The notes under the pieces: model-generated
Databases searched by the model: none
What the model was told of the DNA's origin: nothing
The model's input: the letters and a program-made list of their open reading frames with translations, nothing else
Program-made: the position numbers and the translations under genes
Source: Mobula birostris
Taxonomy: Eukaryota
Reading direction: 5' to 3'
Length of the DNA stretch: 64,000 bases
Assembly: GCF_030028105.1 (NCBI RefSeq)
Contig: NC_092371.1
Location: 15,087,884 to 15,151,883 of the forward strand
In this document: positions 1 to 46,544 of the stretch, in pieces
Layout of the letters: every line of letters begins with the position of its first letter
Numbering within the stretch: position 1 is the stretch's first letter

Positions 1-1319
1 GGAAAACTGTTGGAAAAGATTCTTAGAGATAGAATCTATGGGCATTTGGAGAATCATGGTCTGATCAGCGACAGTCAGCATGGCTTTGTGAAGGTCAGAT
101 CGTGTCTAACAAGCCTGATAGAGTTCTTCAAGGAGGTGACTAGGCATATAGATGAGGTAGTGCAGTGGATGTCATCTATATGGATTTTAGTAAGGCATTT
201 GACAACGTTCCACACGGTAGGCTTACTGAGAAAGTCCGAAGGCAAGAGATCCAGGGAAGTTTGGCCAGGTCGATTCAGAATTGGCTTGCCTCTAGAAGGC
301 AGAGGGTCGTGGTGGAGAGGGTACATTCAGATTGGAGGATTGTGCCTGGTGGTGTCCCACAAGGATCTGTTCTGGGACCTCTACTTTTCGTGATTTTGTT
401 AACGACCTGCATGTGGGGGTAGAAAGTTGCGTTGGCAAGTTTACAGACAACAAAAAGGTTGGTGGTGTTGTGGATATTGTAGAGGGTTGTCGAAGAATAC
501 GGAGACGCAGAAGTGGGCTGAGAAGTGGCAGATGGAGTTCAACCCGGATAAGTGTGAGATGGTACACTTTGGAAGGACAAACTCCAAGGGAGAGTACAAA
601 ATAAATGCCACAGGACTTGGTAGTGTGGAGGAGCAGAGGGATCTGGGGGTACATGTCCACAGATCCCTGAAGGTTGCCTCACAGGTAGATAGGGTAGTTA
701 AGAAAGCTTATGGGGTGTTAGCTTTCATAAGTCGAGGGATAGAGTTTAAGAGTCGCTAAGTAATGATTCAGCTCTATAAAACTCTGGTTAGGCCACACTT
801 GGAGTATTGTGTCCACTTCTGGTCGCCTCACTATAGGAAGGATGTGGAAGCATTGGAAAGGGTACAGAAGAGATTTACCAGATGCTGCTTGGTTTGCAGA
901 GTATGAATTATGATCAGAGATTAAGGGAGCTAGGGCTTTACTCTTTGGAGAGAAGAAGGATGAGAGGAGACATGATGGAGGTGTACAAGATATTAAGAGG
1001 AATATATAGAGTGGACAGCCAGCGCCTCTTCCACAGGGCACCACTGCTCAATACAAGAGGACATGGCTTTACGGTAAGGAGTGAGAATTTCAAGGGGGAT
1101 GTCAGAGGAAGGTTTTTTACTCAAGTGTGGTTGGAGCGTGGAATGCATTTCCTGAGTCAGTGGTGCAGGCATATACAATAGAGAAATTTAAGAGCCTACT
1201 AGACGGGCATATGGAGGAATTTAAGGTGGCGGGTTATATGGGAGGCAGGGTTTAAGGGTTGGAACAACATTGTGGGCCAAAGGGCCTGTACTGTGCTGTA
1301 CTATTCTATGTTCTATGTT
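1..1319 (+). mobile_element. CR1 LINE 3' part (RT to 3' tail), degenerate
   Basis: RT fragments DVIYMDFSKAFD.VPH, GVPQGSVLGPLLF and KWQMEFNPDKC; (TCTATGT)-type tail at ~1300-1319; frameshifts and stops. Confidence 0.92.
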
Positions 1320-1529
1320 AAATGCCTCACTAAAATCCAAGTAGACAGCATCCACAGTTCCACTTTCGTGAATCACGCTCGTACCTCTTCATGAAACCGT
1401 CAAGTTTGTAAGACACGGCCCTAATGCTCTTAACGAGACCGAACACGGCCTCCATTTTATCTCGAAATGCCCTGTAATATCAACTTGCTTAGAACTGATC
1501 TCTCTGTCCTCCACGTCCTTCTACTTGGT

Positions 1530-1830
1530 AAGTGGTGCATTTATGTCTGCAGGGCACTCTAGGGCATATCAGGCCAGGACACAATCAGTCCGTATGCTCT
1601 CTTCTTCAGGCATCTGTAGAAGTTTGTGAAAGTTTTAGATTACATGGCAAACGTTTAAAAACTTCTAACAAAGAAGGGACGCTACCGTGCCTTCTGTGTA
1701 ATGGCAGTTTTGCGCTGGACACAGGACAGATTCTCTGAAATGGCAACGCTTAGGAATTTAATGTCGCTGACGGCGTCTACCTCTGATACCCCGATAAAGT
1801 CTGACTCATCTCCTTGTTCTAGCTGACATT
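1530..1830 (-). mobile_element. Rex1/Babar-like LINE fragment (paralog ~34590-34890)
   Basis: The minus strand resembles the decayed FKFLGV.ISE.LSW...ITKK...RLYFLR.L..F C-terminal region of Rex1/Babar ORFs; recognised by eye. Confidence 0.55.
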
Positions 1831-2267
1831 GAGTGGGACGCTGTTTTTGTTACACCATTCAACCGGCTAAGCTCCCGACCGTATGGGTCAGGCCTATGAA
1901 CGAGGGAAGCAAAAGGTACACGATCAGCATTAGGAATTATATTCGAAGGACAGTGGTGGGTAGGTTTAGTGAGTTGCTAGGCTTAGCGGTGGACTCGGGT
2001 AAAACTGCGCAGTTTAGAAGACATTGGGGCAGGTTCAAGGGTGTGAAAAACATGGGTGACATAAGCGAAATGCAAGGAAGTGGGCTTAGCACAGGTAGGC
2101 AATTTTATCGGCATGGACATATTGGCAACAATTCCGCGCTGTGTAACTACGTAAAATTAAGTGCCGGATTTTGTAACAAACAGGGACAGGGTTTTAGTCT
2201 CTGTCGTTAACCCGGGGTAGGATGAACAACTATGACCTGACCCACTCATTCAGAGGCTGTGGAGAAA

Positions 2268-2309
2268 TCTCTCTCTCTCTCTCTCCCTCTCTCTCTCTCT
2301 TTCTCTCTC
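2268..2309. repeat. (CT)n microsatellite (longer paralog ~35326-35407)
   Basis: Direct reading. Confidence 0.9.
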
Positions 2310-3389
2310 GGGATCCATTCAAAGCTGTTATTTCACACTCTTTACATTAAAACAACTTAATTGCCGGCAGCAAAAAAATCAAATTGTGAAAACGATTTTT
2401 CAAAGATTCAGTTTCATAATTTGTGTCTTCCGGTTATTGTACTTTCTAACTTTTAAAGTTTTTTAATATGTTCACCGTGTCTTCCACACCCGCCCCTCCA
2501 CGTAAGTGTCCACCATTACCAAGGGGCTCAACGACCGCTCCACCTGCACGGCTTCATAAACAAAACAGGAACAGCAGCAATTTGCGTACATTTGCTAAAT
2601 AAAGGCTCTGCCAGCACCGCTCGGTCCCCATGGGGAGATGAAGTGGATCGCAGCTGCATCAGTAACGCTCAGAGTCATGGGCTGCTTCACTCTGTGGACA
2701 ATCTTGAGGGAGGGATTAACTGGACAGAACAGTGTCTGATGGTCAGGTTGGCTTGAAGGAAACGTCCCGGTTCATTGCCCACTGATTTTCCAGATCCCAT
2801 TCCCCGTTCCCCATGCCGAATAAGAGCATTTACATTTAAAAGACGCCTTACACAGCGTAAAACTGCAGGACATTATGAGGTAACGTTTCCGAAATAAAAA
2901 TGAGCGGCGTTATTGGACAAACGTTGAGACCGAGTCACATAAGCAGAATATTTATTTGGAAGAAACCTTCTCATCCCGTATCCAATATCCGCCCAATATC
3001 CCTGAGGAGATGGGAGCTGAACGGGGGGTGGGGGGGGGGGCTGGGTGGTGATGAACTAAAACACAGACAACAGAAGCCAGGGGTGAGGTCTGACAGTCCA
3101 CTGTCAGTAACATCTACCTTTAGAAAGAAGTTCAGAATCTGAATCCGACTGATGTCTATAATCGCCAGCGAATGTGGTTGTTGTTTTTTTTTATTTTGTG
3201 GTTTTGTATTTATTTATTCTAAAAGTACATTGTACGTGTAATTTATTTATCTATATACAGTATATATAATTTAATAAATACAGTATACATTGTCAGTTTA
3301 GAAATCTAATGATGAATTGGAACAAGCTGTTCTTTAAACGCTAGTTTGTTTATTTATTTATTTATTTGTTTGTTTGTTTGTTTGTCTTC

Positions 3390-6300
3390 AGGCTTTTTCC
3401 TTCCAAAGTGGATGACCTCTCATTTACCAACATTGTACTCCATACTCTATCTGCCAGACCCTTGCTCAATCACTTAACCTATCTATACCTAACTGCAGAT
3501 TCTTCGTATACTCTGCACAGTTTGTTTTTTGACTCAATTTAGTTTCATCTGCAAACTTACATACACTGCACACGGTCCCCTCTTCCAGACCTTTAACGTG
3601 TATCTTGAACAGTTGAGGGCCCAGTACCGACCTCTGCGCCACACCATGCACCACTGATTGCCACCCAGAGAAACATGCATGTATCCCAACTCGCTTCTTT
3701 CTATTGGTTAACCAATCATTAATCAATGCTAAAAATCACTCTCAACACTATGCATGGTTATCTTTATATGTGGCACCTTATCGAACGTCCTAGAAACATA
3801 GCAACATAGAAAACCTGCAGCACAATGCAGGCCCTTCGGTCCACAATGTTGTGTCGAATATGTACTTACTTCAGAAATTACCTAAGGTTATCCATAGCCC
3901 TCTATTATTCTAAGCTCCATGTACCTATCCAGGATTCTCTTAAACTACCCTATCGTATCCGCTTCCAGCACCGTCGCCGGCAGCCCATTCCACGCACTCA
4001 TCATTCTCTGTATTAAAAAAAAAACCTCCCTTATCTCTCCTCTGTACCTACTTCCAAGCACCTTAAAACCGTGCCCTCTCATGCTAGCTATTTCAGCCGT
4101 GGGAGAAAGCCTCTGACTATCCAGACAAACAATGCCTCTTATCATCTTATAGACCGTTATCAGGTCACCTCTCATCCTCCACCGCTCCAAGGATGAAAGG
4201 CCGAGTTCACTCAACCTGATCTCATAAGGCATGCTCCTTGTAACATCCTTGTAAATCTCCTCTGCGCCCTTTCTATAGTTTCCTCAATCTTCCTGTAGTA
4301 TGGTGACCAGAACTGAGCACAGTGCTCCAAGTGGCGTCTGACCAGCATCCTATATAGCTGCAACATTACCTCTCGGCTCTTAAAATCGATAGTGCAGTTG
4401 ATGAAGGTCAATGCACCGTATGCTTTCTTAAACACACAGTCAACCTGCGCAGCAGCTTTGAGTGCCCTATGGATTCGAACCCCAAGATCCCTCTGATCCT
4501 CCACACTGCAAATTAATACTACATTCTGCCATCATATTTGACCTACCAAAATGAACCACCTCACATTTATATGGGTTGAACTCCATCTGCCAATTCTCAG
4601 CCCAGTTTTGCATCCTTTCAATATCCCGCTGTAACCTCATTGGTCATCGACATCTATACAGAATTTGACCGCACTTTCCCTTCTGTGGACAAGTCAATTC
4701 AGTATCCACAAACCAAGGTCCCTTTGATTCACTTACCTCCTTACTTTCTCAGTAATCCTTGTATCGGGCACCTTATCAAATGTCTTGCTGAAATCCATAT
4801 ACACTACATCTACTGTTCTACCTTCATTAATGTGTTTAGTGACATCTACCAGGCTTGTAATATATAACCTGCCTTTGACAAAGCTATGCTGGCTATTCCT
4901 AATCACATTATGCCTCTCCAAACGTTCATAAATTCCACCTCTCAGGATCTTTTCCATCAACTTACCAACCACTGAGTTAAGACTCACTGATCAATAATTT
5001 CCTGGGCTATCTCTACTCCATTATTTGAATAAGGGAACAAGATATGCAAGCCTCCAAGCCTCCAGAACCTCTACCATCCTCACTAATGATGCAAAGATCA
5101 TTGCCAGTGACTCAACAATGTTCTCCTTCGCCTCCCATAGTAGCCTAGGCTATATTTAGCTCTTAATGTCTATATGCTCAAGCTTTTCAGACCGCTGTAA
5201 GTCGTCCCTGCAATCGCCAAGATACTTTTCCGTATTGAAAGGTAATTTACGTCTGGAAATTGAAGTAAGTAACGTCCATCTGTCCACCCTATCCATTATG
5301 TTGTTATATCCTCAAGGAACACCAGTATGCTTGAGAAACAGGATCTGCTTTTCTTTAATCCATTCTGCGACTGCGTGATAGATGTATTTCTTTCCATACT
5401 GCCGCGCTGTTTGTTCTTTAATGATAGCTTCAAGCATTCTCCCAGCTACGAAGGTTAGACGAACTGCCTTTTGCCTACAACCTTTTTTTTTATCACTGGG
5501 GTAACATTCTCCTTCTTTCAATCCACGGGGACCTGCCCAGACTCCAGGGAATTTTGGTAACTTATCATCAAAGCCCCAACTATAATCTTTCTCATTTCTT
5601 TCATTATCCTGGGCGGCGTTCTACCAATTCCAGGGGACTTGTCTGTCTTTGGCCCACATATTTACTTAACTCTACCCCTTTAGCGGTAGTATTTGTATCG
5701 AGGTTCTCACTTCCCATCGCATCCATTTCATCTCTCTTCGGCATGTTAGACGTGTCCTCCACTGACACAAAATTGTCATTCAAAGCCTCGGCCATTTCCT
5801 CAGTACCCAATATCAATTCCCCCCTCTCGTCCTTCAAGGAACCTACATTCAGTTAGGTCACCTTTTTCCGTTCTATATAATTGTAAGAAATATTATGCGT
5901 TTTTATGTTAAGTGCTAGTTTATTTACATAATCTACCTGCTCTTTTTTATTGCTTGCTTAGTGGCTCTTTGTTGCTTTTTAATTTTTTCCCAGCCTTCCA
6001 GTTTCACACTACTCTTGGCGACTTTGCAGACACAAGCTTTCAGTTTGATATTTTCCTTTATTTCCTTCGTTATCCATGGCTGGTTTTACCCGCCCTTACT
6101 GTCCTTGCTTTCAACGTTGGTTGAGCATCGTGAAAAATATCTTTGACAGTCTTCCACTGTTCCTTAACCGACCAGCCATCTAGCTTCTCTTCCCAATCTC
6201 CCCTATAGAAATTCTCCCTCATCCTGTTGTAGTCTCCCATGTTTTGGTACTGGTTTTAGATCGAACTATTGCATCCGCCATTTGTATGAGAAAATCAGTC

Positions 6301-7610
6301 ATAATGTGATCATTCTTTTCAAGATGCTGCGTACCTATAAGAATGCTAATTCTACCTGTCTCATTGCACAAGATCAGATTTAAGAAAATATGTTTCCTTG
6401 TAGGTTCAGCAACATGTTGTTCAAGAAAGTTATCCATATGCATTCTATGAAGTCCTCCTTAAGACTATCTCGACTAATTTGGTTCATCTCGTCTACCTAG
6501 TTGATATCTCGCACGATAACTGCTGTTACACTCTTACATACCTGAGATATTTCGCGGTTCATTGCCTGTGCCAATGTAATGTTATTATTCAGTGGCCTAA
6601 AGATAACTCCTAGCAGTATTTTCCCTAAACTGTTTCTAATCTCTACCCAGATAGATTCAATGTTCTGCTCCTTAGATCTTCTATCGTCTCTCTCTGTCGC
6701 CCTGATCTCATTCTTGATTAAGAGGGCTACCCCATCGGCCTTACCACTCTGCCTATCGCTCCATACTACCTGATATCCTTGGACATTTAATTACTAATCC
6801 TCTCCTCCCTGCAACTCCGTTTCTGTAATGGCCAGTAAGTAATACGCCTTTATTCTGATTTGTGCCACAGGTTCACTGGCCTTGTTAGAAATGCTACGGG
6901 AAATCAGATTAACTGCCTTTACACTCGTTGTGCCTTTAAAATCGAGTAATCTTTGTCTCTTACACACTGGAATTTTCTGCACTCCGCCTATACTTTTCTC
7001 TTTTTTATCGTTTCCTTTTACGTTACCTATATGCACACGTTCCTCTTTTACATTATCCATACTTCTCCAGTCTGTTGAGCCTACCCCTGCTATTTAGTTT
7101 AAAGCACTACCCAGAACCCCAGTTATGTGATCCACCAGGATCCAGGTCCCATCACGGTCCAGGTGGAACCCGTCCCAATGGGACAGCTCCCGTCTTCCCC
7201 AGTGCTGCTGCCAGTTTCCCGTGTATTTTAAGCCACTTCTCCCACACCAAACCTTGAGCCACGCATTTAACTCTTTAATCTTCTTAACCCTTTTCCAATT
7301 TGCACTTGGCTCACGCAGTAGTCCAACTTTTTGTTTCTACTTTTTAATTGAATCCCGAACAGTTCAAATTCCCTCAGTAAAACCTCTTTCCTCGTTCCAC
7401 CTACTTCGTTAATACCCACATGGATCTCGACACTGGATCTTTCTCTTCGAACCGCAAATTCCTCTACAGGTCAGATAGGATGTCCCGAACCCAGGCATCA
7501 GGCATGAAACACAGACTTCGGGACTGTGGTATCAATGGTTGCATTTCCAGGAATGTAGATACTCAAACTTTGGACATTTTCGTGGATATGGAGGGGGATA
7601 TCAATAAATT
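3390..7610 (-). mobile_element. Older near-complete CR1 (esterase-APE-RT remnants) interrupted by a nested CR1 (paralog ~36480-40750)
   Basis: Minus-strand remnants: WLTNRKKRVGI...SVLGPQLF...KFADETKL (3466-3726), the VDV.YF.FQ region (~5260), APE-like VESIWVEIRN (paralog ORF 39356-39829) and esterase-like WDGFHL (paralog 40229-40555). Confidence 0.8.
3790..5248 (-). mobile_element. 5'-truncated CR1 nested inside the older CR1 (paralog 36884-38378)
   Basis: CR1 3' tail (tagaaacatag...) at 3790, RT pieces (LEHCAQFWSP, SLNSVVGKLMEKIL), flanked by ACGTC direct repeats at 3785-3789 and 5249-5253. Confidence 0.8.
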
Positions 7611-8082
7611 TCCAGATTGCTAAATATGTTAGACGTCTCTACTTTCAAGGTGCAGAAACCGAACGGTACCAATTTTAACTATTGCGTGAAAAAAAGAGTT
7701 AGGGAGAGAGAGACAGAGAGAGCTCGATTGCTAGTGATAGTTGTGTATCACAGTGCTGTGGCTTTACTTGTTTCCCATGAGAAATGTTAGTGTATTGCCC
7801 GACTATTTCCCTTTATTTCTGCAGATTCAAACTGAATTGGTTGCAGAGTGATTATCCTTCAAATCCCTAGTCCTGACCAACGAATGGGAGAATATGTTTG
7901 TAACTGAGCAAAACGCGATTGGGGCCGCCTTGAGTATATCCTCAAATGATTAATCTCCGATGATAACCACCACAAGGAATTATCCTAATCTTTCAATTTT
8001 CAAAGGAAATACATCTCAGCACACCATGTATGTCTGGAAGGAACGGACAGTCCACATATTCAAAGGTAGTAACTTCATCATA

Positions 8083-8086
<4 letters not shown>

Positions 8087-8159
<73 letters not shown>

Positions 8160-8170
8160 AAGAGAGAGAG
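8087..8170. repeat. (GA)n microsatellite (paralog ~41224-41310)
   Basis: Direct reading. Confidence 0.9.
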
Positions 8171-8299
8171 GAGGCAGGGCTACAAAAATACTGTTTTTCT
8201 GATCTTCCTTTTAGAGGGTTGGCGAAATCCATTATTAATCCCTCAGAACACTCAGGAAATAAGGATAGGTCGTAAGAGTGTGGAAAGAGCTACCATGGA

Positions 8300-9290
8300 A
8301 ACTGAAAACTACAGGTTCTATTTCAACATTAAGAGGAAATTTGGGTAGAGGCATTGATAAGAGCAATAAGGAGCGCTAAGTTCCGGGTGCAGGTCGATAG
8401 GACCAGGCAGCATCATAGTTCAGCTTGGAATAGTTGAGCCGAAGGGCCAGTTTCTGTGCTGTAGTAATTCAGGAATCTAGTTCTCTGTGGCCCTAATGAC
8501 AGCACTGTTGATGTATTGTACTGAGGTCCGATTTTTGAGTAATAGAAGAGCAGGCAACTGATGGAGGAATTGTCAGAATATAGAGTCATAACGTCGTACA
8601 ACACTGAAGCAGGCCCTTTGACTCAACCAATCGATATCGAACTAGAAGGCCACACAATCTAGTACAATTTGCTACCTTTTCTCCCTTATCGCAACAAATC
8701 TTTGCAATACATGTCCAAATACCTATATACAAGCCGGTTAAATGTTGTAAATGTGTGTGCAACTAACAACTCATCACGTAGCTCATTACGTATGTGCCTG
8801 CCATCTCTTGAAAAGAATTGCTCCTCAGAATCCTATTAAATCTTTTTTTTTCTTACTTACGGTAAACCTATACACACTCGTTCTTCATTCCCCAACCTTG
8901 GGTAAAAGAAGACTAAATGGTCACCTCCGTTTGCTATTTGCGTTTATCTACTCTTTTCTAGGGTGACCTTTCAATCTCCTACGCTCCAAAGAAAAAAGTC
9001 CAAACCTATATGGCCTATCCTTATCACTCAGTTCCTCGAAACCTACACATATCTTCATAAATATTTGCTGCAAAATTCCCTACACAATGGTATTTTTTTC
9101 TGAATGCAACGTGACTAATACTGAAGACAATATCAACGGCGGCCTGATTAACGTCTAATACATATGCAACATTGTATCCCATCTCCGAAAGTAAGTGCTC
9201 TGGCTGATGCAGGTCATTTTGCCAAAAGATTCTTCACCGCATTACATACCCATGACTTCACTTCGGGGATAGAATTTTCGACGTGAATGG
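8300..9290. mobile_element. Short decayed CR1 3'-end fragments in both orientations (paralog ~41440-42430)
   Basis: CR1-type 3' UTR segments (gggccagtttctgtgctgta; aggccctttgactcaac) and antisense RT-tail similarity; no usable ORF. Confidence 0.55.
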
Positions 9291-10254
9291 AATGGACAAT
9301 TAAGAATTTAGTGCAGGAAGTTGGGTGACAAGTTCTATTTCAATAGAAAAGGGAGAAAGTGCGAGAGGCTAATAAAGGCAAAGCTACCCCGGCCTTATTT
9401 TTTCATGGTCCACAGTGCATTCCCGTTAAACCAGTGGAAAAGAGAATACTTTTTAGGGTGGTGGTGGGATGTTTTCCGGATTTTGCAGAGCAGCGGGAAT
9501 TATGTCCAGATAATTGCACAGCTTTTTTTAATGTCATCGAAGGATTTATAGGATCAGATACGTGTCCAGTCTCCTGAATCAGACTTGATAACTTCACTCA
9601 ACTAAGGAACAGACCGATTCCATAAAATATAGATTCACGTTCAAGGAATCTAGAACCCATGTTATTTAATGATATCCATCTATCTGTCTGTTTGTTTATT
9701 TAATTATTTTCATGTTTGCACAGTTTGTATTATTTTCTGCATTAGCGGATTGTCCGTCTTTATGTGTAGTCTTTTATTGATCCCGTTGTATTTCGTAGCG
9801 TTTACTGTGGATGCATGCGCGAAAATAAGTCTGAGGAAGGGTTTTTTTCGATTTTTTCTTTATACATTGAATCTTATGATCCCCAACCATGGGCTACGTT
9901 CTAATTTGTACCATAATTTAATAAGTACAGTGTTTTTTGGACAATGGTCAGCACTGGATGCTGATAGCGAAGGCATCAACCAGGTACGGGACGTGCATTG
10001 GGTCATTCTGACGATTTGGTAAGTGTGACAACGAATAATTTTGATCTCATTAGCAACTTGGGCAGAAAAAAATGCGCCTAATGGTCCCCAGTTTGTTTTT
10101 CTTTCAATGAATATCTGCTGATATACTTGCCTAAATCAGTTTACTTTGAGTACTTGTCAAACACATCCATATATGACACAACTGAAGATGAAACATTTTT
10201 GAAATTAATGGGTAAATTTAAAGATCGTCATTCATAGATACCAACGGCTGGGTG

Positions 10255-10429
10255 ATCAGTCCCCGCCCTTCCTTTCCCTGGCGCCTCCCATTTATTAACA
10301 CCCCGGTTAATAAACAGATCACGGGGCTGCGATTTGCAGAATCTGGAACCGGAGTCGCTCCCGGTGTTTGCAGAACAGCACGGTTCGGTCGGAAAATTGA
10401 GCGCTCGCTGTCTCCACCTGTCCGCAGTA
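10255..10429 (+). promoter_or_regulatory. Putative IgL V promoter, cluster 1
   Basis: GC box CCCCGCCC 10261-10268, AT-rich TTAATAAA near 10307, octamer-like ATTTGCAG 10332-10339 and E-box CACCTG 10415-10420, all directly upstream of the leader ATG. Position and motif types fit Ig V promoters; function is not shown. Confidence 0.6.
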
Positions 10430-10478
10430 ATGTCCCGAGTACTCCATCTCCTGTGTGCTCTGCTGGTCCATTTATCAG
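10430..10478 (+). CDS. Ig light chain cluster 1, leader exon (MSRVLHLLCALLVHLS-G)
   Basis: ATG at 10430, hydrophobic 16-codon signal peptide, phase-1 donor CAG|gtaag at 10478/10479. The 124-nt intron ends ttgttgcag at 10602 and splices in frame to the VJ exon. Confidence 0.93.
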
Positions 10479-10602
10479 GTAAGAGATATATTACGGATTA
10501 TCCGTGAAAATTGCAATTACTACTCATTTTAACGCGTATTTATCAATTGGTGAGCCTTCTGTTAGATCCAAGTCACCCAATGGTTTCATTGTTTTGTTGC
10601 AG

Positions 10603-10956
10603 GTATCCTAACGGCCCCAGTCCTCAATCAGACACCAATGTCGGGTCCCGTCTCCGCGGGACAGACCGCCCGCTTAGAATGTCGGATGCAGAACGGTAAC
10701 GTTGGAAGTTACTACATGTACTGGTACCGACAGCGTCCCGGGGAGAGACCGGAGTGGGTGATTAGACATGATACTGATGGTGATATATTTCGAGGGACAG
10801 GGATCACAAATCGATTCCAACCGTCCAGAGACACCTCCAGCAACAGTCACGTCCTGACCATCGGCAGATTGGAGCCCCGAGACTCCGCTGTTTATTACTG
10901 TCAAACGTGGGATAATGGAGTTATCTTCGGTCCAGGCACTATCCTGGATATAAAAA
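10603..10956 (+). CDS. Ig light chain cluster 1, germline-joined VJ exon, sigma-cart (type I/NS5)-like
   Basis: Translates GILTAPVLNQTP...LECRMQNGNVGSYYMYWYRQRPGERPEW...DSAVYYCQTWDNGVIFGPGTILDIK. Contains both V-set Cys, the WYRQ motif, YYC and the J motif FGPGT in one reading frame, then donor A|gtaagt at 10956/10957. APVLNQTP, MQNGNVGSYY and FGPGT..DI match my recollection of shark NS5/skate type I chains, as does the long (11-residue Kabat) CDR2. Confidence 0.95.
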
Positions 10957-12291
10957 GTAAGTGACTCCCTCATTCCTTTCCAAGCAATTCCCATCACAGC
11001 CGGTCTTATTTCCCACCACTATAGAAATCCCTATATCCAGGCAATTCTGGTACCGTCTTAAAGCTGTGGCGGAGTACGACCTATCTCCTATCGGGACATG
11101 AGGACATTCCGTTCCACTAAAGAACCATGACTGAATTTAATGAATTTTTTTACACCATGTACATGCCGGCATTCAATCGCCTCAGTCTGATGTGGTAAAA
11201 GCCCAGACCGATCAGAAATTTTCGGAATTTAATCTACTGACCCCTTGTCCAGAACTGACGAAATCGGAGACAGCACAACTCACCCTTATACTTTCCCTAA
11301 GATATGCTCATGGATTTTTTTCCGATATTTCGAAGTGCTGTAAATGGTGGTTGTCGCATTCAGAATTGACTGCTTCAAATTAAAACCTTTAACGAGGTGG
11401 CAAACAAGGAAGGGAAAATGCCAATTTTTAAAGTTACATTGCAGGACAGCGGCTGAGTTCGCAGAGAGTGGGGCGGCAATAGGAGGGGTTCGTTTATGTC
11501 CGGGAGTTATTCTCGGTCTGAATTGGACGGCTCCTTGTTTCCTCGCCCATCTCCGCCCCATAGAACTGCTCGTATATTCCGCTATTTCCTCTGCCATCAC
11601 TGGGCGGACGAATTTGGCCATCCTGAAGAGATGTTCACAAAATCAGGGACGAGCGAATTCGATATCTGGGTGTTACCGCAATTCAGTGCGGAATTCCACT
11701 CAGCCAAGTGACCAGTAACAGGGTCGTACCGGCTTTTTCGTGGTGGTGGGTGGGTGGGTGCTGGGGGGTCGTATTTGAGTAATTCTTAACCCGAATCGGA
11801 AATCTCTGTTAGAGAGAAAAGTCGATTCGAACTCCAGAATTTGCTGAGCTCCTTTACATAGCTGAAAGGGTCAATTCCGTCAATTCGTGGCCCAATTAAA
11901 GATCTAAGGAAATATTGCAGACAGGCAGTAAACACAAATTTACCGACAGACTAATAACCAGAAAGCACCGCGTGCAGGGTATAGATAGGTGGAATGAGTG
12001 AGGCTATTTCCTCCTCATTTTTGGCGCACGTGATTCCCCGCTCGGAAAGATAATGAAAGTTATAAGCGCACTTCGGAGTTGTGATTAACCTGGGAAAATC
12101 TTCACGGACATTATCATTCACCGAAACAATGACTGTATAACCGCCAGACATTTCACTCTTTGCCGTAATATTCGGTGGCTTGTGGTTTTTTTTTCCGTAG
12201 TAGAGTTGTTTTTTTTATTAATTCCGAGTTTCAGTCATCCCTAACACTAATATTTTTTTCTGTTCCCATCCGTCTAATCTCTCTCACACAG

Positions 12292-12620
12292 GCAGCGAGT
12301 CCCGGAGACCTTCAATTCTACTGCTCCCTCCCTCTCCGGAGGAGACAGCCACGGGTTCGGCTACTCTCTCCTGTCTGGTGAGTGGTTTTAAGCCGGGCTT
12401 GGTAGCGCTGCGCTGGAGCGTGGATGGAGTCGAGACTGAGAGTGGGGTGACCACAGGCGCCGTGTCGGCAGGCACCGACCAGACCTACAGGCTGAGCAGT
12501 TACCTGCGAGTACCCGCCGATGTCTGGAAAAAGGGTTCAAGCTATGCCTGCAGCGTGAGCCACAGCTCGTTGAGCTCGCCTTTGCGGAACACCATCTCTT
12601 CGTCGGCTTGTGCGCAGTAA
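12292..12620 (+). CDS. Ig light chain cluster 1, constant (C1-set) exon
   Basis: Acceptor ctctcacacag at 12291. Phase 1 continues as SSESRRPSILLLPPSPEE...ATLSCLVSGFKPG...RW...YACSVSHSSLSSPLRNTISSSACAQ*. Both intradomain Cys, the Trp and the terminal inter-chain Cys are present. Spliced CDS is 49+354+329=732 nt = 243 aa plus stop. Confidence 0.95.
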
Positions 12621-13357
12621 GAACGCGGCGTCTGGCAGCACAGTCGGATTGTTAGCTCCTGCATAATGCAGTGAAACTCTCACTGGGACTGTGCAGCGAC
12701 CTTGTGCAATGTAATTGTGCAGTAATATTTTAACGCAAACAATCAACCGTATAATAAGTTTGGAAATCACGGGATGATTGTCTGTCTTTCGCGACGCGTA
12801 CTTCTCTGTAGAATTGTAACTGCTGTGCTATGTCTGAAATTCCACTATGTATAAAATGGGTAGATCTGCGTGTAGAAGGTGACCGTGTTGTGATTGGATT
12901 TTGTGATAAACACAGCTCGTAATAGAAAAGCAACTGCGGGTGGGTTATCCGTCCTCTGTCTTTACTCGGCTGTCCACAGTACGTCGGGAGTTTGCTAGCG
13001 TGTACCGTGCCATCTCAAAGTCGACTCACATAGAATTACACTCAAATCCACTGAAATATCCTATCCCGCCGTTCCTGCAGAATACTGATGTCTGTGTCCT
13101 ACGCTGGCCTCATCGCCTTCGCTCGCCTCTCCACCATCACCGGATTCTTCATTTCCTCGCTGTCCTGCACCTTTGCTCTTCATTTCCAACCTTCTCAGTG
13201 GGAAGTACATCAATATTCTCACTGCCTTTTAGCGGTATTCTGACCACCACTGGGAGTGTTATACTGTCAGCTTTGTTTCACCGTGACGTTGGCATTCTGT
13301 CCATATGAAATTTTAGATTCTCTTCGTTCCTCCACAGAGACCAAACGGCCTCACAAA

Positions 13358-13364
<7 letters not shown>

Positions 13365-13389
<25 letters not shown>
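13365..13389. repeat. (CA)n microsatellite (paralog ~46502-46550)
   Basis: Direct reading. Confidence 0.9.
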
Positions 13390-13392
<3 letters not shown>

Positions 13393-13937
13393 CACAAACA
13401 TATAATCTTCCAGGAAACACTTCTGAGAATCTACTGCCGATGGCTATATTAATCCAGGCGAAAGTATCTGCTCTATTACCAATGTGATGCATTTTTTTTC
13501 GTTCCGTCACAGGAATGATTTAAAGCTGTGGGGAGGAGAATAGTATAACGTAACAAACAGACACCAGAGCAGTTTATTCGGCCATTTTCTCCCACTACAT
13601 CTTTCAATGCAATCACGGGTGACCTTCATTGCAGTTGCTGTTTGCTGCACTAATCCTTGATCCACTAAACTCTGAATATCTAAACATCTCTCAGTCTGGA
13701 ACTCCCCAACAGTTACTGTGACGTCCGCTTCAAAGTCCAATGTAAATCTACTATCGAAGTATCTATATGTCACTATATACTACCTGGCGATTCATTTTCT
13801 CGTGGGCCTTGGCAGTAGAACAAAGAATTACTTTTCACGATAAGATCAATGATGAACAGATAAGCAACCAATGTGCAAAAGGAGAATAGTTGCACATAAA
13901 TAAATAGATTAATAGATGGATGATAGATATATAAATT

Positions 13938-13965
13938 GATTGATAGATAGATAGATAGATAGATA
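13938..13965. repeat. (GATA)n microsatellite (paralog ~47065-47113)
   Basis: Direct reading. Confidence 0.85.
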
Positions 13966-14230
13966 TATTATTTGATAAATAACTAATACATATAGCATGA
14001 GTTACAGTTACTGAAAGGGACTGCATAGGTTCTGGAATCAGTTCAGAAATTTGGCTTTTGAAGTCGCATGCGCTTTGTCAGCAGATTGCTATTTGAAAGC
14101 CCACACTGGATGATGTAGGGCCCAAGGCTTCTGTATTTGTCACATGGGATCGAGCTGCTAAACAAGGAAACAGCTGATGAGTGCATGTGAACGAAGGGAT
14201 CTCATCGAGTTTGGTTCGAAGCGGGGAGAC

Positions 14231-14399
14231 ATAGAAACATAGAAACATAGAAAATAGGTGCAGGAGTAGGCCAGTCGGCCCTTCGAGCCTGCACCTCCAT
14301 TCAGTATGATTATGGCTGATCATCCAACTCAGAACTCTGTACCAGCCTTCCCTCCATACCCCCTGATCCCTTTAGCCACAAGGGCCATATCTAACTCCC
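14231..14399 (-). mobile_element. 169-bp CR1 3'-end insertion present only in copy A
   Basis: Starts with the (atagaaac)n tail complement. Copy B reads through the empty site (ggagac|gacgagcagg at 47396/47397). Confidence 0.8.
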
Positions 14400-16039
14400 G
14401 ACGAGCAGGAAAGACTAAACGGCAGCTGGATTAGTAAAACACACACAATTCAGGAGGAAATAAGCAGGTCAGGCGACATATATGGACACCCACTGCTGAA
14501 AGTAGAGTGGTGCTCCACAAACATCCTCCCAATCCCCAAAAAAAACACACAAGGAGAAGGGCTACTACCCAGTGATCTCTACGCTGGTGTTCTCCCAATA
14601 TCCACGGGGAAGAAACGGAAGGGTTCATTCCAGGTTGTGAACAGTTGACTAATGGGCTTGTTCAGAAGTAAAAGAGCTTCCAACCAGAGATGCAGTGTTT
14701 GTAAACTGGCTGATGTTTGACAAGTGTATTTCACTGTTGAGGGTTGTGCGGTATTCCCGGTCGTATCCGGTCCCGCTTTTACAGTGGCGACCATGGCACA
14801 GATTTGCCATCGCCTGCTCAAAGCAGAAACGTCATCAACTGAAGAGATTCTGCAGAGTAACACATACAAAATGCTGGAGCAATTTAGCAGGTCAGGCAGA
14901 GTCTTTGGAAGCGATTAAAGAATCAACATACCAGGCAGAGTCTCGTCATCAGAACAGGAAGGGTCTCGGCAGGAAACATCGATTCTTTATTTCGTCACAT
15001 TAACATTTCGTGACCTGCTGAGTTCCTCCAGGATTTTGCGTAGAAACCTCATTTGTCCTTGATGAGGTTTCTACGATGTTGGGGATGTGTCAACATGTGC
15101 CCTGACTTTCAAGAACCAGTAGTACCACATTAAGTCCTCTGATTCTGGAGCATGTGGACAACCGTACGCGACGTATGAAAATAAATTATGTCCATACGAT
15201 AGGAATCAAATGAACAGTCGTGTATACGACGCCCTCACCTGTTTAGTTCAAATGATTAATATTTTTAACATTCGAAAACATCTGAGAAAATGCTGAGACA
15301 GTCAAAAGCCTTTCAACACATTCAAGGAGAGGATTTAGTACAAATGGGGAGGACGCTGTTGAGAGCACGGTCTGTGGTTTTGACCTCCATGTTTATGAAA
15401 GGGTATACTCGCATTGGAGGCAGTGTAGCGACGGTTCGCATTGTTGGCTCTGGAATAAATGATTGAATATAACAGAGGGGTTGGATAAGTAGTTCCCCCC
15501 TCCCCACACACACACACACACACAATAAAATCTCCAGCTTCAGCTCAGTTATAAGAAGCCGAGTTGGCGAATTCTCTCGGATTCGTCATCTTTACCTCCG
15601 CACACAGAGGTAGTAACACTGTGCAACTCAGGACTGCATTGCACAATAGAAATCCCCTGGCAAATGGACGGTACCGTATAAAACACACACGATGATTTCA
15701 AAAAAGAGGGATTGCACCCCGTGAGTGTACCTTCAGTCCATATTTCTCTTATTCCATTTTGCACTAAAAAACATTGTAAAACAGTTAGTTAAATACACAA
15801 TATAAATAAAACGCACCAACCTAGCAATTGTCCTGCATGTCCAGAGATAAATGTATTTTCATGTCTGCATGACGTTTTCATGTCATCTACAATGACAATA
15901 AGCAATCTAAGTACAATGGTTTACTAAATTATAAAAGATACTGGGTATAAAACGGTACGATCACCAACTGGAAAGGTGAAGACTAATAATATCGTGGCGG
16001 TAGAGTGAATCGTCCACCATTCAATTAATTAAGAGAATG

Positions 16040-30334: not shown

Positions 30335-33300
30335 GACGAGCGCCTGGCTTTGGCGAGAAGAGGCTGAGGACGAGCTTGCTCCCAGTGAGGTAAGGCCGGG
30401 TAAGCTCCTTAAATTAATCTAATTAACTTAGAAGTAGGTAAAGGAGGCAACAGGGCAGTAGAATGCTCCGTTTGTACTATGTGGGAAGTCAGGGCGAGCA
30501 CAATTGTCCCTGATGACTATACCTGTAAAAGGTGCATCCAGTTGCAGCTCCTGACAAACCGAGTTAGGGAACTGGAGCTGGAGCTGGATGAACTTCGGAT
30601 CATTCGTGACCCAAAGGTAGAAATAGACAGGTGTTACAGGGTGATAGTCACCCCTAAAAGTCAGGAGATAGGTAACTGGGTGACTGTCAGGAGAGGGAAG
30701 GGGAATAGACAGAATGAGCAGAGCACCCCTATGGCCGTTCCCATCAATAATAAGTATACCGTTTTGGATACCGTTGGTGGAGACGACCTACCATGGACAG
30801 GTCGCGGTGGTCGCGTCTCTGGCACCAGACGGGACCCTCAGCTCAAAAGGGAAGGTGGGAAAAGAAGAGAGCAGTAGGGGATTCTGAAGTAAGGGGGACA
30901 GATAGGAGATTTTGTTGGAGAGATCAAGAATCCCGGATGGTCTGTTGCCTCCCTGGTGCCAGGTCCGGGATATGTCGGATCAAATTCTCAGTATTCTCAA
31001 GAGTGAGGGTCAGGTGGCAAATGTTATGGTCCATATAGGGACCAATGACGTGGATAGGAAGAAGGAGGAGGTCCTGCAAAGAGAGTTTATGAAGTTAGGG
31101 GCAAAGTTGAAGAACAGGACCTCCAGGGTTTCAGTCTCAGGATTGCTACCCGTGCGACGTGCAAGTGAGGCTAGAAATAGGAAGATAATGCAGTTAAATA
31201 CGTAGCTAAGGAGTTGGTGCAGGAGCGAAGGCTTCATGCTTGTGGACAATTGGGCCTTGTTTCAGGGAAGGTGGGACCTGTTCCGACGGGACGGGTTGCA
31301 CCTGAACTGGAGGGGGACTAACATCCTTGCGGGAAAGTCTGCTAGTTCTGCTCCGGGGGTTTTAAACTAGATTTGCAGGGAGAAGGAAATAGATAGAGCA
31401 GATAGTGTGGTTGAGGAGGGTAAAGGTCAAGCGAGAACTGCAAGTATACTACATGGAGTAAAGCCAGATCTCACATATAAAGAGGTTCTGAAGAAAGAGA
31501 AGCAGAGTAAAGGGTGTAAGGGTAACAAGGTAGAAGGGCTAAAGGGCATGTACTTCAATGCAAGAAGCATCAGCAACAAAGGTGATGAACTTGGATACAT
31601 ACATCGAATTATGATGTAGTGGCCATTACAGAGACTTGGCTGACACCAGAGAAGGAATGGATTTTCAATATGCCTGGATTTCAGTGCTGTAAAAGGGATA
31701 GAGAGGGGGGAAACGGGAGGAGGGGTAGCATTACTGGTCAGTGATACTATTACAGCTACAGAAAGCGTGGATCATGTAGCAGGATTCTCTTTTGAGTCAG
31801 TATGGGTAGAATTCAGGAACAGGAAGGGAGCAGTTGCTCTATTGGGAGTATTCTATAGGCCCTGGTAGCAGCAGAGATACAAGGAGCAGATTGTGAGGCA
31901 GATTTTGGAAAGGTGCAAAAATAACAGGATTGTTTTCGTAGGTGACTTTTACTTCCCTAATATTAATTGGCACCTGTTTAGTTCCAACGGTTTAGACGGG
32001 GCAGAGTTTTTTCAGTGTGTCCAGGATGGATTCCTGTCACAATATGTGGACAGGCCGACTAGCGGGGAGCCATACTAGATCTAGTACTAGGTAACGAACC
32101 GGGACAACTCACAGATCTTTCAGTGGGTGAGCATCTGGGGGACATTGACCACAGCTCCCTGGCCTTTAGCATTATCGTGGAAAGGGATAAAATCTGAGAG
32201 GACAGGAAAATGTTTAATTGGGGAAGGGCAAATTATGAGGCTATAAGGCTAGAACTTGCGGTTGTGAATTGGGATGATGTTTTTGCAGGGAAATGTACCA
32301 TGGACATGTGGTCGATGCTTTCGGATCTCTTGCGGGATGTTTTGGATAAATTTGTTCTGGTGAGGAAGATAAAGAATGGTAGGGTGAAGGAACCATGGGT
32401 GACAAGTGAGGTGGAAAATCTAGTCAGGTGGAAGAAGGCAGCATACATGACGTTTAGGAAGTAAGGATCAGATGGGTCTATTGAGGAATATAGGGTAGCA
32501 AGAAAGGAGCTTAAGATGGGGCTGAGGAGAGCAAGAACGGGGTATGAAAAGGCCTTGGCGAGTAGGGTAAAGGAAAAAAACCAAGGTATTCTTCAACTAT
32601 GTGAAGAATAAAAGGATGACAGGAGTGAAGTTAGTACAGATTAGAGATAAAGGTGGTAAAATATGCCTGGAGGCTGTGGAAGTTAGCGACGTCCTCAATG
32701 AATACCTCTCTTCGGTATTCACCAAACAGATGGAACTTGATGACGGTGAGGACAATAAGAGTGAGGTTTATGTTCTGGAACATGTTGATATTAAGGGAGA
32801 GGAGGTGTTGGAGTTGTTAAAATACATTAGGACGGATAAATCCCCGGGGCCTGACGGAATATTCCCCAGGATGCTCCATGAGGCGAGGGAAGTGATTGCT
32901 GAGCCTCTGGCTAAGATCTTCATGTCCTCGTTGTCCACGGGAATGGTACCGGAGGATTGGAGGGAGGCGAATGTTATCCTCTAGTTCTAAAAAGGTAGTA
33001 GAGATAGTCCGGGTAATTATAGACCAGTGGGCCTTACGTCTGTGGTGGGAAAGCTGTTGGAAAAGATTGGTAGAGATAGAATATATGGGCATTTAGAGAA
33101 TCATGGTCTGATCAGCGACAGTCAGCATGGCTTTGTATAGGTCAGATCGTGTCTAACAAGCCTGATAGAGTTCTTTAAGGAGGTGACCAGGCATATAGAT
33201 GAGGTAGTGCAGTGGATGTGATCTATATGGATTTTAGTAAGGCATTTGACAAGGTTCCACACGGTAGGCTTATTCAGAAAGTCAGAAAGCATGGGATCCA

Positions 33301-34378
33301 GGGAGGTTTGGCCAGGTGGATTCAGAATTGGCTTTCCTGCAGAAGGCAGAAGGTCGTGGTGGAGGGAGTACATGTAGATTGGAGGATTGTGACTAGTGGT
33401 GTCCCACAAGGATCTGTTCTGGGACCTCTACTTTTCGTGATTTTGTTAACGACCTGGATGTGGGGATAGATTGTTGGGTTGGCAAGTTTACAGACAACAA
33501 AAAGGTTGGTGTTGTTGTGGATAGTGTAGAGGGTTGTCGAAGAATACGCAGAGACACTGATAGGATGCAGAAGTGGGCTGAGAAGTGGCAGATGGATTTC
33601 AACCCGGAGAAGTGTGAGGTGGTACACTTTGGAAGGACAAACTCCAAGGAAGAGTACAAAATAAATGCCACAGGACTTGGTAGTGTGGAGGAGCAGAGGG
33701 ATCTGGGGGTACATGTCCACAGATCCCTGAAGGTTGCCTCACAGGTAGGTAGGGTAGTTAAGAAAGCTTATGGGGTGTTAGCTTTCATAAGTCGAGGGAT
33801 AGAGTTTAAGAGTCGCTAGGTAATGATGCAGCTCTATAAAACTCTGGTTAGGCCACACTTGGAGTATTGTGTCCACTTCTGGTCGCCTCACTATAGGAAG
33901 GATATGGAAGCATTGGAAAGGGTACAGAAGAGATTTACCAGATGCTGCTTGGTTTAGAAGTATGAATTATGATCAGAGATTAAGGGAGCTAGGGCTTTAC
34001 CCTTTGGAGAGAAGAAGGATGAGAGAAGACATGATGGAGGTATACAAGATATTAAGAGGAATATATAGAGTGGACAGCCAGCGCCTCTTCCACAGGGCAC
34101 CAATGCTCAATACAAGACGACATGGTTTTACGGTAAGGGGTGGGAATTTTAAGGGGGATGTCAGAGGAAGGTTTTTTACTCAAGTGTGGTTGGAGCGTGG
34201 AATGCACTTCCTGAGTCAGTGGTGGAGGCAGATACACTAGTGAAATTTAAGAGCCTACTGGACAGGCATATGGAGGAATTTAAGGTGGCGGGTTATATGG
34301 GAGGCAGGGTTTAAGGGTTGGAACAACATTGTGGGCCGAAGGGCCTGTACTGTGCTGTACTATTTTATGTTCTATGTT
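30335..34378 (+). mobile_element. Near full-length (~4 kb) CR1 LINE, inactivated
   Basis: ORF1 Cys/leucine-zipper region (DDYTCKRCIQLQLL..RVRELELELDEL), SGNH esterase (VHIGTNDV), APE (YFNARSI, VGDFYFPNINW), RT and 3' tail in the correct order, with several stops and frameshifts. Its 3' 1.3 kb is the paralog of 1-1319. Confidence 0.92.
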
Positions 34379-35322
34379 AAATGCCTCACTAAAATTCAAG
34401 TAGACAGCATCCACAGTTCCACTTTCGTGAATCACGCTCGTACCTCTTCATGAAACAGTCAAGTTAGTAAGACACGACCTTAATGCTCTTAACGAGACCG
34501 AACACGGCCTCCATTTTATCTCGAAATGCCCTGTAATATCAACTTGCTTAGAACTGATCTCTCTGTCCTCCACTTCCTTCTACTTGGTAAGTGGTGCATT
34601 TATGTCTGCAGGGCACTCCAGGGCATATCAGGCCAGGACACAATCAGTCCGTATGCTCTCTTCTTCAGGCATCAGTAGAAGTTTGTGAAAGTTTTAGATT
34701 ACATGGCAAACGTTTAAAAACTTCTAACAAAGAAGGGACGCTACCGTGCCTTCTGTGTAACGGCAGTTTTGTGCTGGACACAGGACAGATTCTCTGAAAT
34801 GGCAACGCTTAGGAATTTAATGTCGCTGACGGCGTCTACCTCTGATACCCCGATAAAGTCTGACTCATCTCCTTGTTCTAGCTGACATTGAGTGGGACGC
34901 TGTTTTTGTTACACCATTCAACCGGCTAAGCTCCCGACCGTATGGGTCAGGCCTATGAACGAGGGAAGCAAAAGGTACACGATCTGCGTTAGGAATTATA
35001 TTCGAAGGACAGTGGTGGGTAGGTTTAGTGAGTTGCTAGGCTTAGCGGGGACTAGGGTAAAACTGCGCAGTTTAGAAGACATTGGGGCAGGTTCAAGGAT
35101 GTGAAAAACATGGGTGACATAAGCGAAATGCAAGGAAGTGGGCTTAGCACAGGTAGGCAACTTGATCGGCATGGACATATTGGCAACAATTCCGCGCTGT
35201 GTAACTACGTAAAATTAAGTGCCGGATTTTGTAACAAACAGGGACAGGGTTTTAGTCTCTGTCGTTAACCCGGGGTAGGATGAACAACTATGACCTGACC
35301 CACTCATTCAGAGGCTGTGGAG

Positions 35323-35407
<85 letters not shown>

Positions 35408-38400
35408 GGGATCCATTCAAAGCTGTTATTTCACACTCTTTACATTAAAACTACTTAATTGCCGGAAGCAAAAAAAAATCAAATTGTGAAAACGATTTTT
35501 CAAAGATTTAGTTTCATAATTTGTGTCTTCCGGTTATTGTAGTTGCTAAGTTTTAGAGTTTTTTAAGATGTTCACCGTGTCTTCCACACCCGCCCCTCCA
35601 CGTAAGTGTCCACCATTACCAAGGGGCTCAACGACCGCTCCACCTGCACGGCTTCATAAACAAAACAGGAACAGCAGCAATTTGCGTACATTTGCTAAAT
35701 AAAGGCTCTGCCAGCACCGCTCGGTCCCCATGGGGAGATGAAGTGGATCGCAGCTGCATCAGTAACGCTCAGAGTCATGGGCTGCTTCACTCTGTGGACA
35801 ATCTTGAGGGAGGGATTAACTGGACAGAACAGTGTCTGATGGTCAGGTTGGCTTGAAGGAAACGTCCCGGTTCATTGCCCACTGATTTTCCAGATCCCAT
35901 TCCCCGTTCCCCATGCCGAATAAGAGCATTTACATTTAAAAGACGCCTTACACAGCGTAAAACTGCAGGACATTATGAGGTAACGTTTCCGAAATAAAAA
36001 TGAGCGGCGTTATTGGACAAACGTTGAGACCGAGTCACATAAGCAGAATATTTATTTGGAAGAAACCTTCTCATCCCGTATCCAATATCCGCCCAATATC
36101 CCTGAGGAGATGGGAGCTGAACGGGGGGTGGGGGGGGGGCTGGGTGGTGATGAACTAAAACACAGACAACAGAAGCCAGGGGTGAGGTCTGACAGTCCAC
36201 TGTCAGTAACATCTACCTTTAGAAAGAAGTTCAGAATCTGAATCCGACTGATGTCTATAATCACCAGCGAATGTGGTTGTTGTTTTTTTTATTTTGTGGT
36301 TTTGTATTTATTTATTCTAAAAGTACATTGTACGTGTAATTTATTTATCTATATACAGTATATATAATTTAATAAATACAGTATACATTGTCAGTTTAGA
36401 AATCTAATGATGAATTGGAACAAGCTGTTCTTTAAACGCTAGTTTGTTTATTTATTTATTTATTTGTTTGTTTGTTTGTCTTCAGGCTTTTTCCTTCCAA
36501 AGTGGATGACCTCTCATTTACCAACATTATACTCCATACTCTATCTGCCAGACCCTTGCTCAATCACTTAACCTATCTATACCTAACTGCAGATTCTTCG
36601 TATACTCTGCACAGTTTGTTTTTTGACTCAATTTAGTTTCATCTGCAAACTTACATATACTACACACGGTCCCCTCTTCCAGACCTTTAACGTGTATCTT
36701 GAACAGTTGAGGGCCCACTACCGACCTCTGCGCCACACCATGCACCACTGATTGCCACCCAGAGAAACATGCATGTATCCCAACTCGCCTCTTTCTATTG
36801 GTTAACCAATCATTAATCAATGCTAAAAATCACTCTCAACACTATGCATGGTTATCTTTATATGTGGCACCTTATCGAACGTCCTAGAAACATAGCAACA
36901 TAGAAAACCTGCAGCACAATGCAGGCCCTTCTGTCCACAATGCTGTGTCGAATATGTACTTACTTCAGAAATTACCTAAGGTTATCCATAGCCTTCTATT
37001 GTTCTAAGCTCCATGTACCTATCCAGGATTCTCTTAAACTACCCTATCGTATCCGCTTCCACCACCGTCGCCGGCAGCCCATTCCACGCACTCACCATTC
37101 TCTGTATTAAAAAAAAACCTCCCTTAACATCTCCTCTGTACCTACTTCCAAGCACCTTAAAACCGTGCACTCTCATGCTAGCTATTTCAGCCGTGGGAAA
37201 AAGCCTCTGACTATCCAGACGAACAATGCCTCTTATCATCTTATAGACCGTTATCAGGTCACCTCTCATCCTCCGCCGCTCCAAGGATGAAAGGCCGAGT
37301 TCACTCAACCTGATCTCATAAGGCATGCTCCTTGTAACATCCTTGTACGTCTCCTCTGCGCCCTTTCTATAGTTTCTGCTCTGCGCCCTTTCTATAGTTT
37401 CCTCAATCTTCCTGTAGTGTGGTGACCAGAACTAAGCACAGTACTCCAAGTGGCGTCTGACCAGCATCCTATATAGCTGCAACATTACCTCTCGGCTCTT
37501 AAAATCAATAGTGCAGTTGATGAAGGTCAATGCACCGTATGCTTTCTTAAACACACAGTCAACCTGCGCAGCAGCTTTGAGTGTCCTATGGATTCGAACC
37601 CCAAGATCCCTCTGATCCTCCACACTGCAAATTAATACTACATTCTGCCATCATATTTGACCTACCAAAATGAACCACCTCACATTTATATGGGTTGAAC
37701 TCCATCTGCCAATTCTCAGCCCAGTTTTGCATCCTTTCAATATCCCGCTGTCACCTCATTGGTCATCGACATCTATACAGAATTTGACCCACCTAAAACC
37801 GCACTTTCCCTTCTGTGGACAAGTCAATTCTGTATCCACAAACCAAGGTCCCTTTGATTCACTTACCTCCTTACTTTCTCAGTAATCCTTGTATCGGGCA
37901 CCTTATCAAATGTCTTGCTGAAATCCATATACACTACATCTACTGTTCTACCTTCATTAATGTGTTTAGTGACATCTATCAGGCTCGTAATATACGACCT
38001 GCCTTTAACAAAGCTATGCTGGCTATTCCTAATCATATTATGCCTCTCCAAACGTTCATAAATTCCGCCTCTCAGGATCTTTTCCATCAACTTACCAACC
38101 ACTGAGTTAAGACTCACTGACCAATAATTTCCTGGGCTATCTCTACTCCATTATTTGAATAAGGGAACTAGATATGCAAGCCTCCAAGCCTCCAGAACCT
38201 CTACCATCCTCACTGATGATGCAAAGATCATTGCCAGTGACTCAACAATGTTCTCCTTCGCCTCCCATAGTAGCCTAGGTTACATTTAACTCTTAATATT
38301 TATATGCTCAAGCTTTTCAGACCGCTGTAAGTCGTCCCTGCAATCGCCAAGATACTTTTCTGTATTGAAAAGTGATTTACGTCTGGAAATTGAAGTAAAT

Positions 38401-41222: not shown

Positions 41223-41260
<38 letters not shown>

Positions 41261-43392: not shown

Positions 43393-43567
43393 ATCAGTCC
43401 CCGCCCTTCCTTTCCCTGGCGCCTCCCATTTATTAACACCCCGGTTAATAAACAGATCACGGGGCTGCGATTTGCAGAATCTGGAACCGGAGTCGCTCCC
43501 GGTGTTTGCAGAACAGCACGGTTCGGTCGGAAAATTGAGCGCTCGCTGTCTCCACCTGTCCGCAACA
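43393..43567 (+). promoter_or_regulatory. Putative IgL V promoter, cluster 2
   Basis: Identical to the cluster 1 promoter over about 180 bp; ATTTGCAG at 43470-43477. Confidence 0.6.

Positions 43568-46490: not shown

Positions 46491-46544
<54 letters not shown>

Follow-up and report, generated by a model that had tools for sequence, protein, structure and literature searches.

Divergent CDR1-CDR2 tract in a tandem pair of germline-joined sigma-2 light-chain genes of the ray Mobula birostris

Why two duplicated antibody light-chain genes, which have stayed nearly identical over most of their length, should differ strongly in one short binding loop is the question raised by the locus described here. 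The stretch of DNA analyzed, which is referred to as the window, has a length of 64 kb and is derived from Mobula birostris. It contains two tandem copies of a unit of ~16 kb, located ~33 kb apart: unit A at 1..15960 and unit B at 33048..48820, both on the plus strand. Self-BLAST paired the two units in blocks of 89-96% identity, and MAFFT alignment of unit B with unit A gave 15,703 aligned nt with 4.3% substitutions, i.e., 95.7% identity. Divergence between the units is strongly patchy, ranging from 0.4 to 7% per 500 nt (chi-square P = 3e-24).

Each unit has one gene composed of three exons (leader, VJ, and C), which together span 2.2 kb on the plus strand. In gene A, the leader exon is located at 10430-10478 and is followed by a GT donor, the VJ exon at 10603-10956 (Pfam V-set, E = 1.4e-16), and the C exon including the stop codon at 12292-12620 (Pfam C1-set, E = 4.9e-22); the translation of all three matches P0008 (XP_072132516) exactly. 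In gene B, the leader exon at 43568-43616 has a coding sequence identical to that of A, the VJ exon is located at 43750-44103 (Pfam V-set, E = 3.5e-15), and the C exon at 45419-45747 is paralogous to that of A; its product, again an exact translation, is P0057 (XP_072132524). Both products are annotated proteins of Mobula birostris. No V or C copies besides those of A and B were found by tblastn in the 64-kb window. Pattern search detected an octamer-like ATTTGCA on the plus strand at 10332..10338, ~100 nt upstream of the ATG of gene A, and also at 43470 in B; we take it to be a putative promoter element, as in Ig promoters generally.

The domain order in A and B, according to Pfam, is one V-set followed by one C1-set, in a leader-VJ-C cluster. 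Gene A has 79% identity over 224 aa to the type I chain P0035 of Leucoraja erinacea, and it also groups with type I-like chains of Heterodontus. As judged by sequence similarity to type I chains, A and B are sigma-2 light chains. Sigma-2 is the present name of the isotype also called type I, NS5, or sigma-cart, which has been described as “all joined in skates” (PMC5192425). The J motif FGPGT is continuous with V in the 354-nt exon, and pattern search found no RSS heptamer (CACAGTG/CACTGTG) or nonamer within or beside the VJ exon. Because V and J are contained in one exon and an RSS is absent there, A and B are germline-joined genes. Their junction is identical inside a duplication with ~4% noncoding divergence, and this argues for a germline origin of the joining.

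For examining expression, contigs of two DNA and two RNA-type runs of M. birostris were aligned to gene A at 80% likeness. Depth in the RNA runs X5 and X6 was 10^4-10^5 on exons and about zero in introns; the splice joint 10956>12292, with GT..AG ends, was found in both X5 and X6, and the leader-to-VJ joint 10475>10600 was present in an RNA contig. From this depth and these joints, the light-chain family is transcribed and spliced as modeled. The shares of words found in the RNA-type runs were 0.26-0.30 for A and for B, which we estimate to be ~90% of the words in the exons of each. At position 10780, both the G of gene A and the adenine of gene B, which is also the majority letter of the family, occur in DNA and RNA contigs. 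Both A and B therefore appear to be expressed, and this in individuals different from the one assembled.

The VJ exons of A and B can be aligned without gaps, and they differ at 21 of 354 nt and in 12 amino acids. Ten of these 21 differences are concentrated in a 33-nt patch at 10758..10790 on the plus strand (43905-43937 in B), which covers the end of FR2 and CDR2 and encodes VIRHDTDGDIF in A and LIKHNIDDYIA in B. All these counts agree with the original prediction made for this stretch of DNA, as do the adjacent changes TG/CA (10769-70) and ATT/TGC (10787-89) and the amino-acid changes outside the patch, two in CDR1, one in CDR3, and none in FR1; two replacements in FR3 (V/I and R/S) are to be added to it. 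The differences in the patch are at 10758, 10765, 10769, 10770, 10774, 10780, 10782, 10787, 10788, and 10789. They replace seven of its 11 amino acids, two of which (V/L and R/K) are at the end of FR2, L47 and L49 in our own Kabat numbering. Eight of the 12 amino-acid differences are within Kabat CDRs, which make up 32 of the 117 residues, and two more are those at L47 and L49.

Along the whole aligned duplicate (~15.4-15.7 kb), the patch is the most divergent 33-nt stretch, having 10 differences against seven in the runner-up. When differences were shuffled within 1-kb blocks, a maximum of 10 or more was obtained with P = 0.03, and the local binomial probability of the patch is 8e-7 to 6e-5 for a background of 4.3-7%. 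The patch is real and non-random.

The original prediction regarded the CDR2 differences as mostly non-synonymous. This is correct for the nucleotide count (eight of 10), but 80% of the sites in the patch are non-synonymous, and dN (0.386) is accordingly close to dS (0.396). Nei-Gojobori counts between A and B gave dN and dS of 0.052 and 0.098 for the whole VJ exon, 0.021 and 0.049 for frameworks, 0.135 and 0.285 for Kabat CDRs, and 0.013 and 0.157 for the C exon. The dN/dS ratio is therefore 0.47 over the CDRs and ~1.0 in the patch, and CDR dS is about five-fold framework dS. Positive selection, which had been proposed as one driver of the differences, is not borne out by these ratios for the A/B pair, the one pair to which they apply; synonymous divergence is elevated as well, and this keeps CDR dN/dS from exceeding 1. 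The synonymous excess in the CDRs consists of 4-5 changes (Fisher P estimated at ~0.02-0.05 with pre-defined CDRs), and both synonymous changes in the patch adjoin non-synonymous ones and could be parts of multi-nucleotide mutations. When 23 Mobula proteins are compared, CDR2 is the most variable region, with an entropy of 1.33 bits per column against ~0.3 in FR1, FR3, and C.

Divergence extends beyond the patch. A tract covering CDR1 to CDR2 at 10691..10789 on the plus strand (43838-43936 in B) has 15 differences in 99 nt (15%), five of which are synonymous, and its local binomial P is 2e-5 against the noncoding divergence of 4.3%. The remainder of the VJ exon has only 2/88 and 4/167, in total 6/255 differences, and nearby noncoding DNA differs by 4.3%. 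Raised dS in this tract is not predicted by selection on point mutations alone, while it would be expected if the segment had a separate history or if a mutator acted locally.

A second divergent patch is found in the C exon at 12320..12386 on the plus strand (45447-45513 in B), where 10 differences in 67 nt, nine of them synonymous, are followed by 135 identical nt. Its local binomial P is 5.5e-4; in the whole-duplicate scan it is unexceptional, since noncoding stretches are similarly dense. As an observation on the C exon as a whole, there are 12 silent changes, its dS is far above the noncoding 4.3%, and divergence is ~2% outside 12320-12386. The coding sequence remaining outside both tracts shows ~2% divergence between A and B. 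Each of the two tracts is thus a block of differences including synonymous ones that is flanked by near-identical sequence, as is expected of a conversion tract.

Contigs assigned to other paralogues were compared with A and B at 40 of 406 variant positions. At 12347, 12349, and 12362 in the C-exon patch, nearly all of them carry the letter of B (three of the three listed positions). Toward the 3' end of the C exon, A and B are the same at 10 listed positions and both are unlike these contigs, from which it follows that either A or B is mosaic in the C-exon patch. These contigs differ from A by 16-18% (69/417, 43/241, and 67/363), which is near the ~15% of both tracts. At 80% likeness they stop aligning at 10757-10760, and the comparison of CDR2 with them is limited to position 10780.

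A clear CDR2 mosaic is found elsewhere in the family. In the tree of frameworks plus C, A and B share a clade with M. hypostoma P0058 (support 86/80), and P0019, P0039, and P0032 form a separate clade (support 99/97); the CDR2 of P0058, including a 2-residue insertion, is nevertheless one residue from that of P0019. In P0058, then, an A/B-type framework is combined with a foreign CDR2. Across the family, CDR2 distance tracks C-domain distance (Mantel r = 0.63), and in light of this correlation the sister genes A and B, with seven of 11 residues different, are an outlier. The CDR2 of A has two differences from its relatives P0067 and P0007 and is close even to a Squalus chain. In comparison with family proteins, most positions of the tract are derived in gene B (H, L, K, N, I, Y, and A), and the burst of change is thus one-sided.

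The source of the residues in B was searched for at the protein level. The “YIA” of B is common to P0014, P0016, P0020, and P0022 in this protein-level comparison. B might be the positional orthologue of M. hypostoma P0014, with which it shares “YIA” and the CDR1 His; this is a lead taken from accession order. Among the annotated proteins of a 5.8-billion-protein collection, no exact or near-identical match to the CDR1-CDR2 of B (residues 42-92) was found; the closest in the same collection was Hemitrygon akajei P0020 with 84%, barely above A itself with 82%. The K, N, and I in the CDR2 of B were seen in no annotated family protein. Micro-conversion from other clusters, one of the mechanisms proposed originally, fits best with the raised synonymous divergence, the C-exon patch, and the P0058 mosaic, while a donor is missing among annotated proteins; the possibility that one CDR2 is an exact copy of a third cluster found no counterpart there, the best match being the 84% given above.

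We consider a mosaic history of the CDR1-CDR2 tract of B, with the difference then kept by selection, to be the most likely reading, and give it about an even chance. The uneven divergence along the units, with its 562-nt identical run, the distance of 16-18% to other-paralogue contigs, the outlying CDR2 distance of A and B, and the one-sided burst in B also speak for it. Under this reading, the CDR2 patch would be the core of a tract of ~80-100 nt that has ~15% divergence between A and B at synonymous and non-synonymous sites alike. Either interlocus gene conversion may have copied a short stretch from another cluster into B, or B may have retained a CDR segment of greater age that was not reached by the homogenization through which A and B remain alike. 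The difference would then have been kept by selection favoring unlike binding loops, and purifying selection would hold the frameworks. Here we infer the transfer of a tract, its direction, and its maintenance by selection. In our ranking this mosaic or conversion history comes first; selection on point mutations takes the second place as a possible but clearly less probable account, and a germline AID footprint is unsupported.

The account ranked second involves no transfer of DNA: once the unit had been duplicated, B would have accumulated ordinary point and multi-nucleotide mutations, and positive (diversifying) selection acting on CDR1 and CDR2 would have fixed them. Replacement of seven of the 11 patch residues and the uniqueness of K, N, and I of B among family proteins are in its favor, together with the family-wide peak of variability in CDR2, the intactness of both genes, whose exonic words are found in RNA-type runs, and a precedent in the skate, for which the 1995 report gives CDR replacements in excess of neutral changes (PMC2192082). 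The dN/dS of at most ~1 and the five-fold dS of CDRs over frameworks speak against it, and so does the nearly all-synonymous patch of the C exon, since selection for diversity would not be expected there; we therefore regard it as rather unlikely. A chance cluster, aided by the relaxed constraint of a change-tolerant loop, is less likely again. The permutation over the whole duplicate gave a P of only 0.03, and noncoding stretches reach seven differences per 33 nt and 13 per 67 nt; however, the cluster is located exactly on a CDR within an exon otherwise more conserved (~2%) than introns (4.7%), its local probability is as low as stated above (8e-7 to 6e-5), and the same loop is the most variable one throughout the family.

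Contiguous substitutions are a known product of somatic hypermutation in sharks. Germline hypermutation of the joined VJ exon by an AID-like process, leaving such shark-style contiguous substitutions, had been suggested more speculatively for the patch, and it would explain its contiguous runs of 2 nt and 3 nt as well as the local rise of both dN and dS, as from a targeted mutator. Density alone, however, explains the adjacency: with 10 changes at 33 sites, 2.73 adjacent pairs are expected and three were observed (P(>=3) = 0.57). Tandem runs contain 5/21 of the VJ substitutions and 89/529 of those in the flanks (P = 0.38); for changes at WRC/GYW, the shares are 5/21 (VJ) and 177/528 (flanks; P = 0.48). 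With tandem and WRC/GYW shares matching the flanks, though in tests whose power is low with 10-21 changes, this suggestion was not upheld. In addition, CDR2 is the same or almost so in the pairs P0067/P0007 and P0038/P0066, likely orthologues of M. birostris and M. hypostoma on protein similarity, and therefore CDR2 is not changing fast in the germ line. On this evidence germline hypermutation is highly improbable. An assembly or haplotype artefact, which we consider the least probable of all, may be thought of because repeats with 95.7% identity at a distance of 33 kb, such as A and B, can be mis-assembled. The two products are nevertheless separately annotated (P0008 and P0057), RNA-type runs from other individuals contain, by our estimate, ~90% of the exonic words of either gene, and contigs with G and with A at 10780 are both present in DNA and RNA runs.

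The phenomenon in general has been known since work on skate, and what the A/B pair contributes is chiefly another species and a clearer instance of it. In the little skate, at least 89 type I clusters were characterized in 1995 and all were joined; amino-acid differences were reported to be found preferentially in CDRs, replacements to exceed neutral substitutions, and the joined genes to be expressed (PMC2192082). The manta genes resemble this system (Anderson et al., 1995) in being of the same isotype, joined, without RSS, expressed, and one of many clusters with CDR-focused differences. The manta is a myliobatiform ray, however, and unlike the skate genes as reported, the A/B pair has no replacement excess (CDR dN/dS 0.47). 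The proposal that the repertoire has been rebuilt in the germ line after junctional diversity was lost restates a conclusion that the skate report had already published for type I (PMC2192082). A further difference is that the genomic context is visible in the manta: the tandem units are ~33 kb apart, their divergence is patchy, and the C exon contains a patch of its own. From this context, exchange in patches would seem to be how the A/B difference arose. We found no papers on manta-ray light chains.

Chicken Ig V genes undergo somatic gene conversion from pseudogene donors (PMC2193156). The clustered tracts in A and B, including synonymous changes on a near-identical background, and the CDR2 cassette of P0058 are like germline conversion among V paralogues and like the somatic process of the chicken; unlike in the chicken, the event in the manta would be evolutionary, i.e., in the germ line and not somatic, and there is no donor among annotated proteins. 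One further speculation, which we regard as very unlikely, is that the CDR1-CDR2 and C-exon tracts are templated micro-conversions started preferentially at joined VJ exons by AID-like activity in germ cells. Rays that lost junctional diversity would in this way restore the diversity of their light chains through the germ line, by a process resembling the somatic gene conversion of the chicken. The likeness to shark somatic hypermutation is that a shark-type light chain has contiguous differences, of 2 nt and of 3 nt, within a CDR; in the manta, in contrast, these are differences between germline paralogues, their frequency equals that of the flanks and of chance adjacency, and they have no WRC/GYW bias.

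The A/B pair is of importance in presenting, in full genomic context, a non-rearranging antibody family that keeps its loops different while the rest of the cluster is near-identical. If the tracts are confirmed as conversion, the manta and devil-ray assemblies will become a tractable system for the rates of CDR cassette movement, and the balance of selection and homogenization will also be measurable there.

Several minor observations on the family were obtained. In the framework-plus-C tree, the branch of A is about four times that of B (0.022 vs 0.0054). When compared with the other-paralogue contigs, A is the odd one out at every listed A/B difference, i.e., at 10780, 10851, 12347, 12349, 12362, 12523, 12530, and 12570. 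In the V domain of P0039 of M. birostris, the canonical first Cys is replaced by Tyr (LEYQM) and the Asp before YYC is absent, and the CDR2 of P0039 has the 2-residue insertion of the P0019/P0058 type.

Other observations concern the noncoding part of the units. About 8 kb upstream of gene A, the region 2446-3946 (paired with 35546-37040) has only 13 differences in 1,500 nt between the units and includes a 562-nt run at 2468-3029 that is identical in both. It contains noncoding DNA and a reverse-transcriptase-like fragment, and its near-identity could reflect a recent homogenization tract or a conserved element. Reverse-transcriptase-like ORFs are located within the duplicated unit at 3466-4232 on the minus strand and are probably a LINE fragment; a copy of this element, inverted and 80% identical, is present at ~18250-19080. 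The 5' ends of the units (135-1233 and 33182-34292) recur inverted at 62882-63997 on the minus strand with 88-89% identity, and this recurrence at the end of the window suggests a further inverted unit, or a fragment of one, downstream of B.
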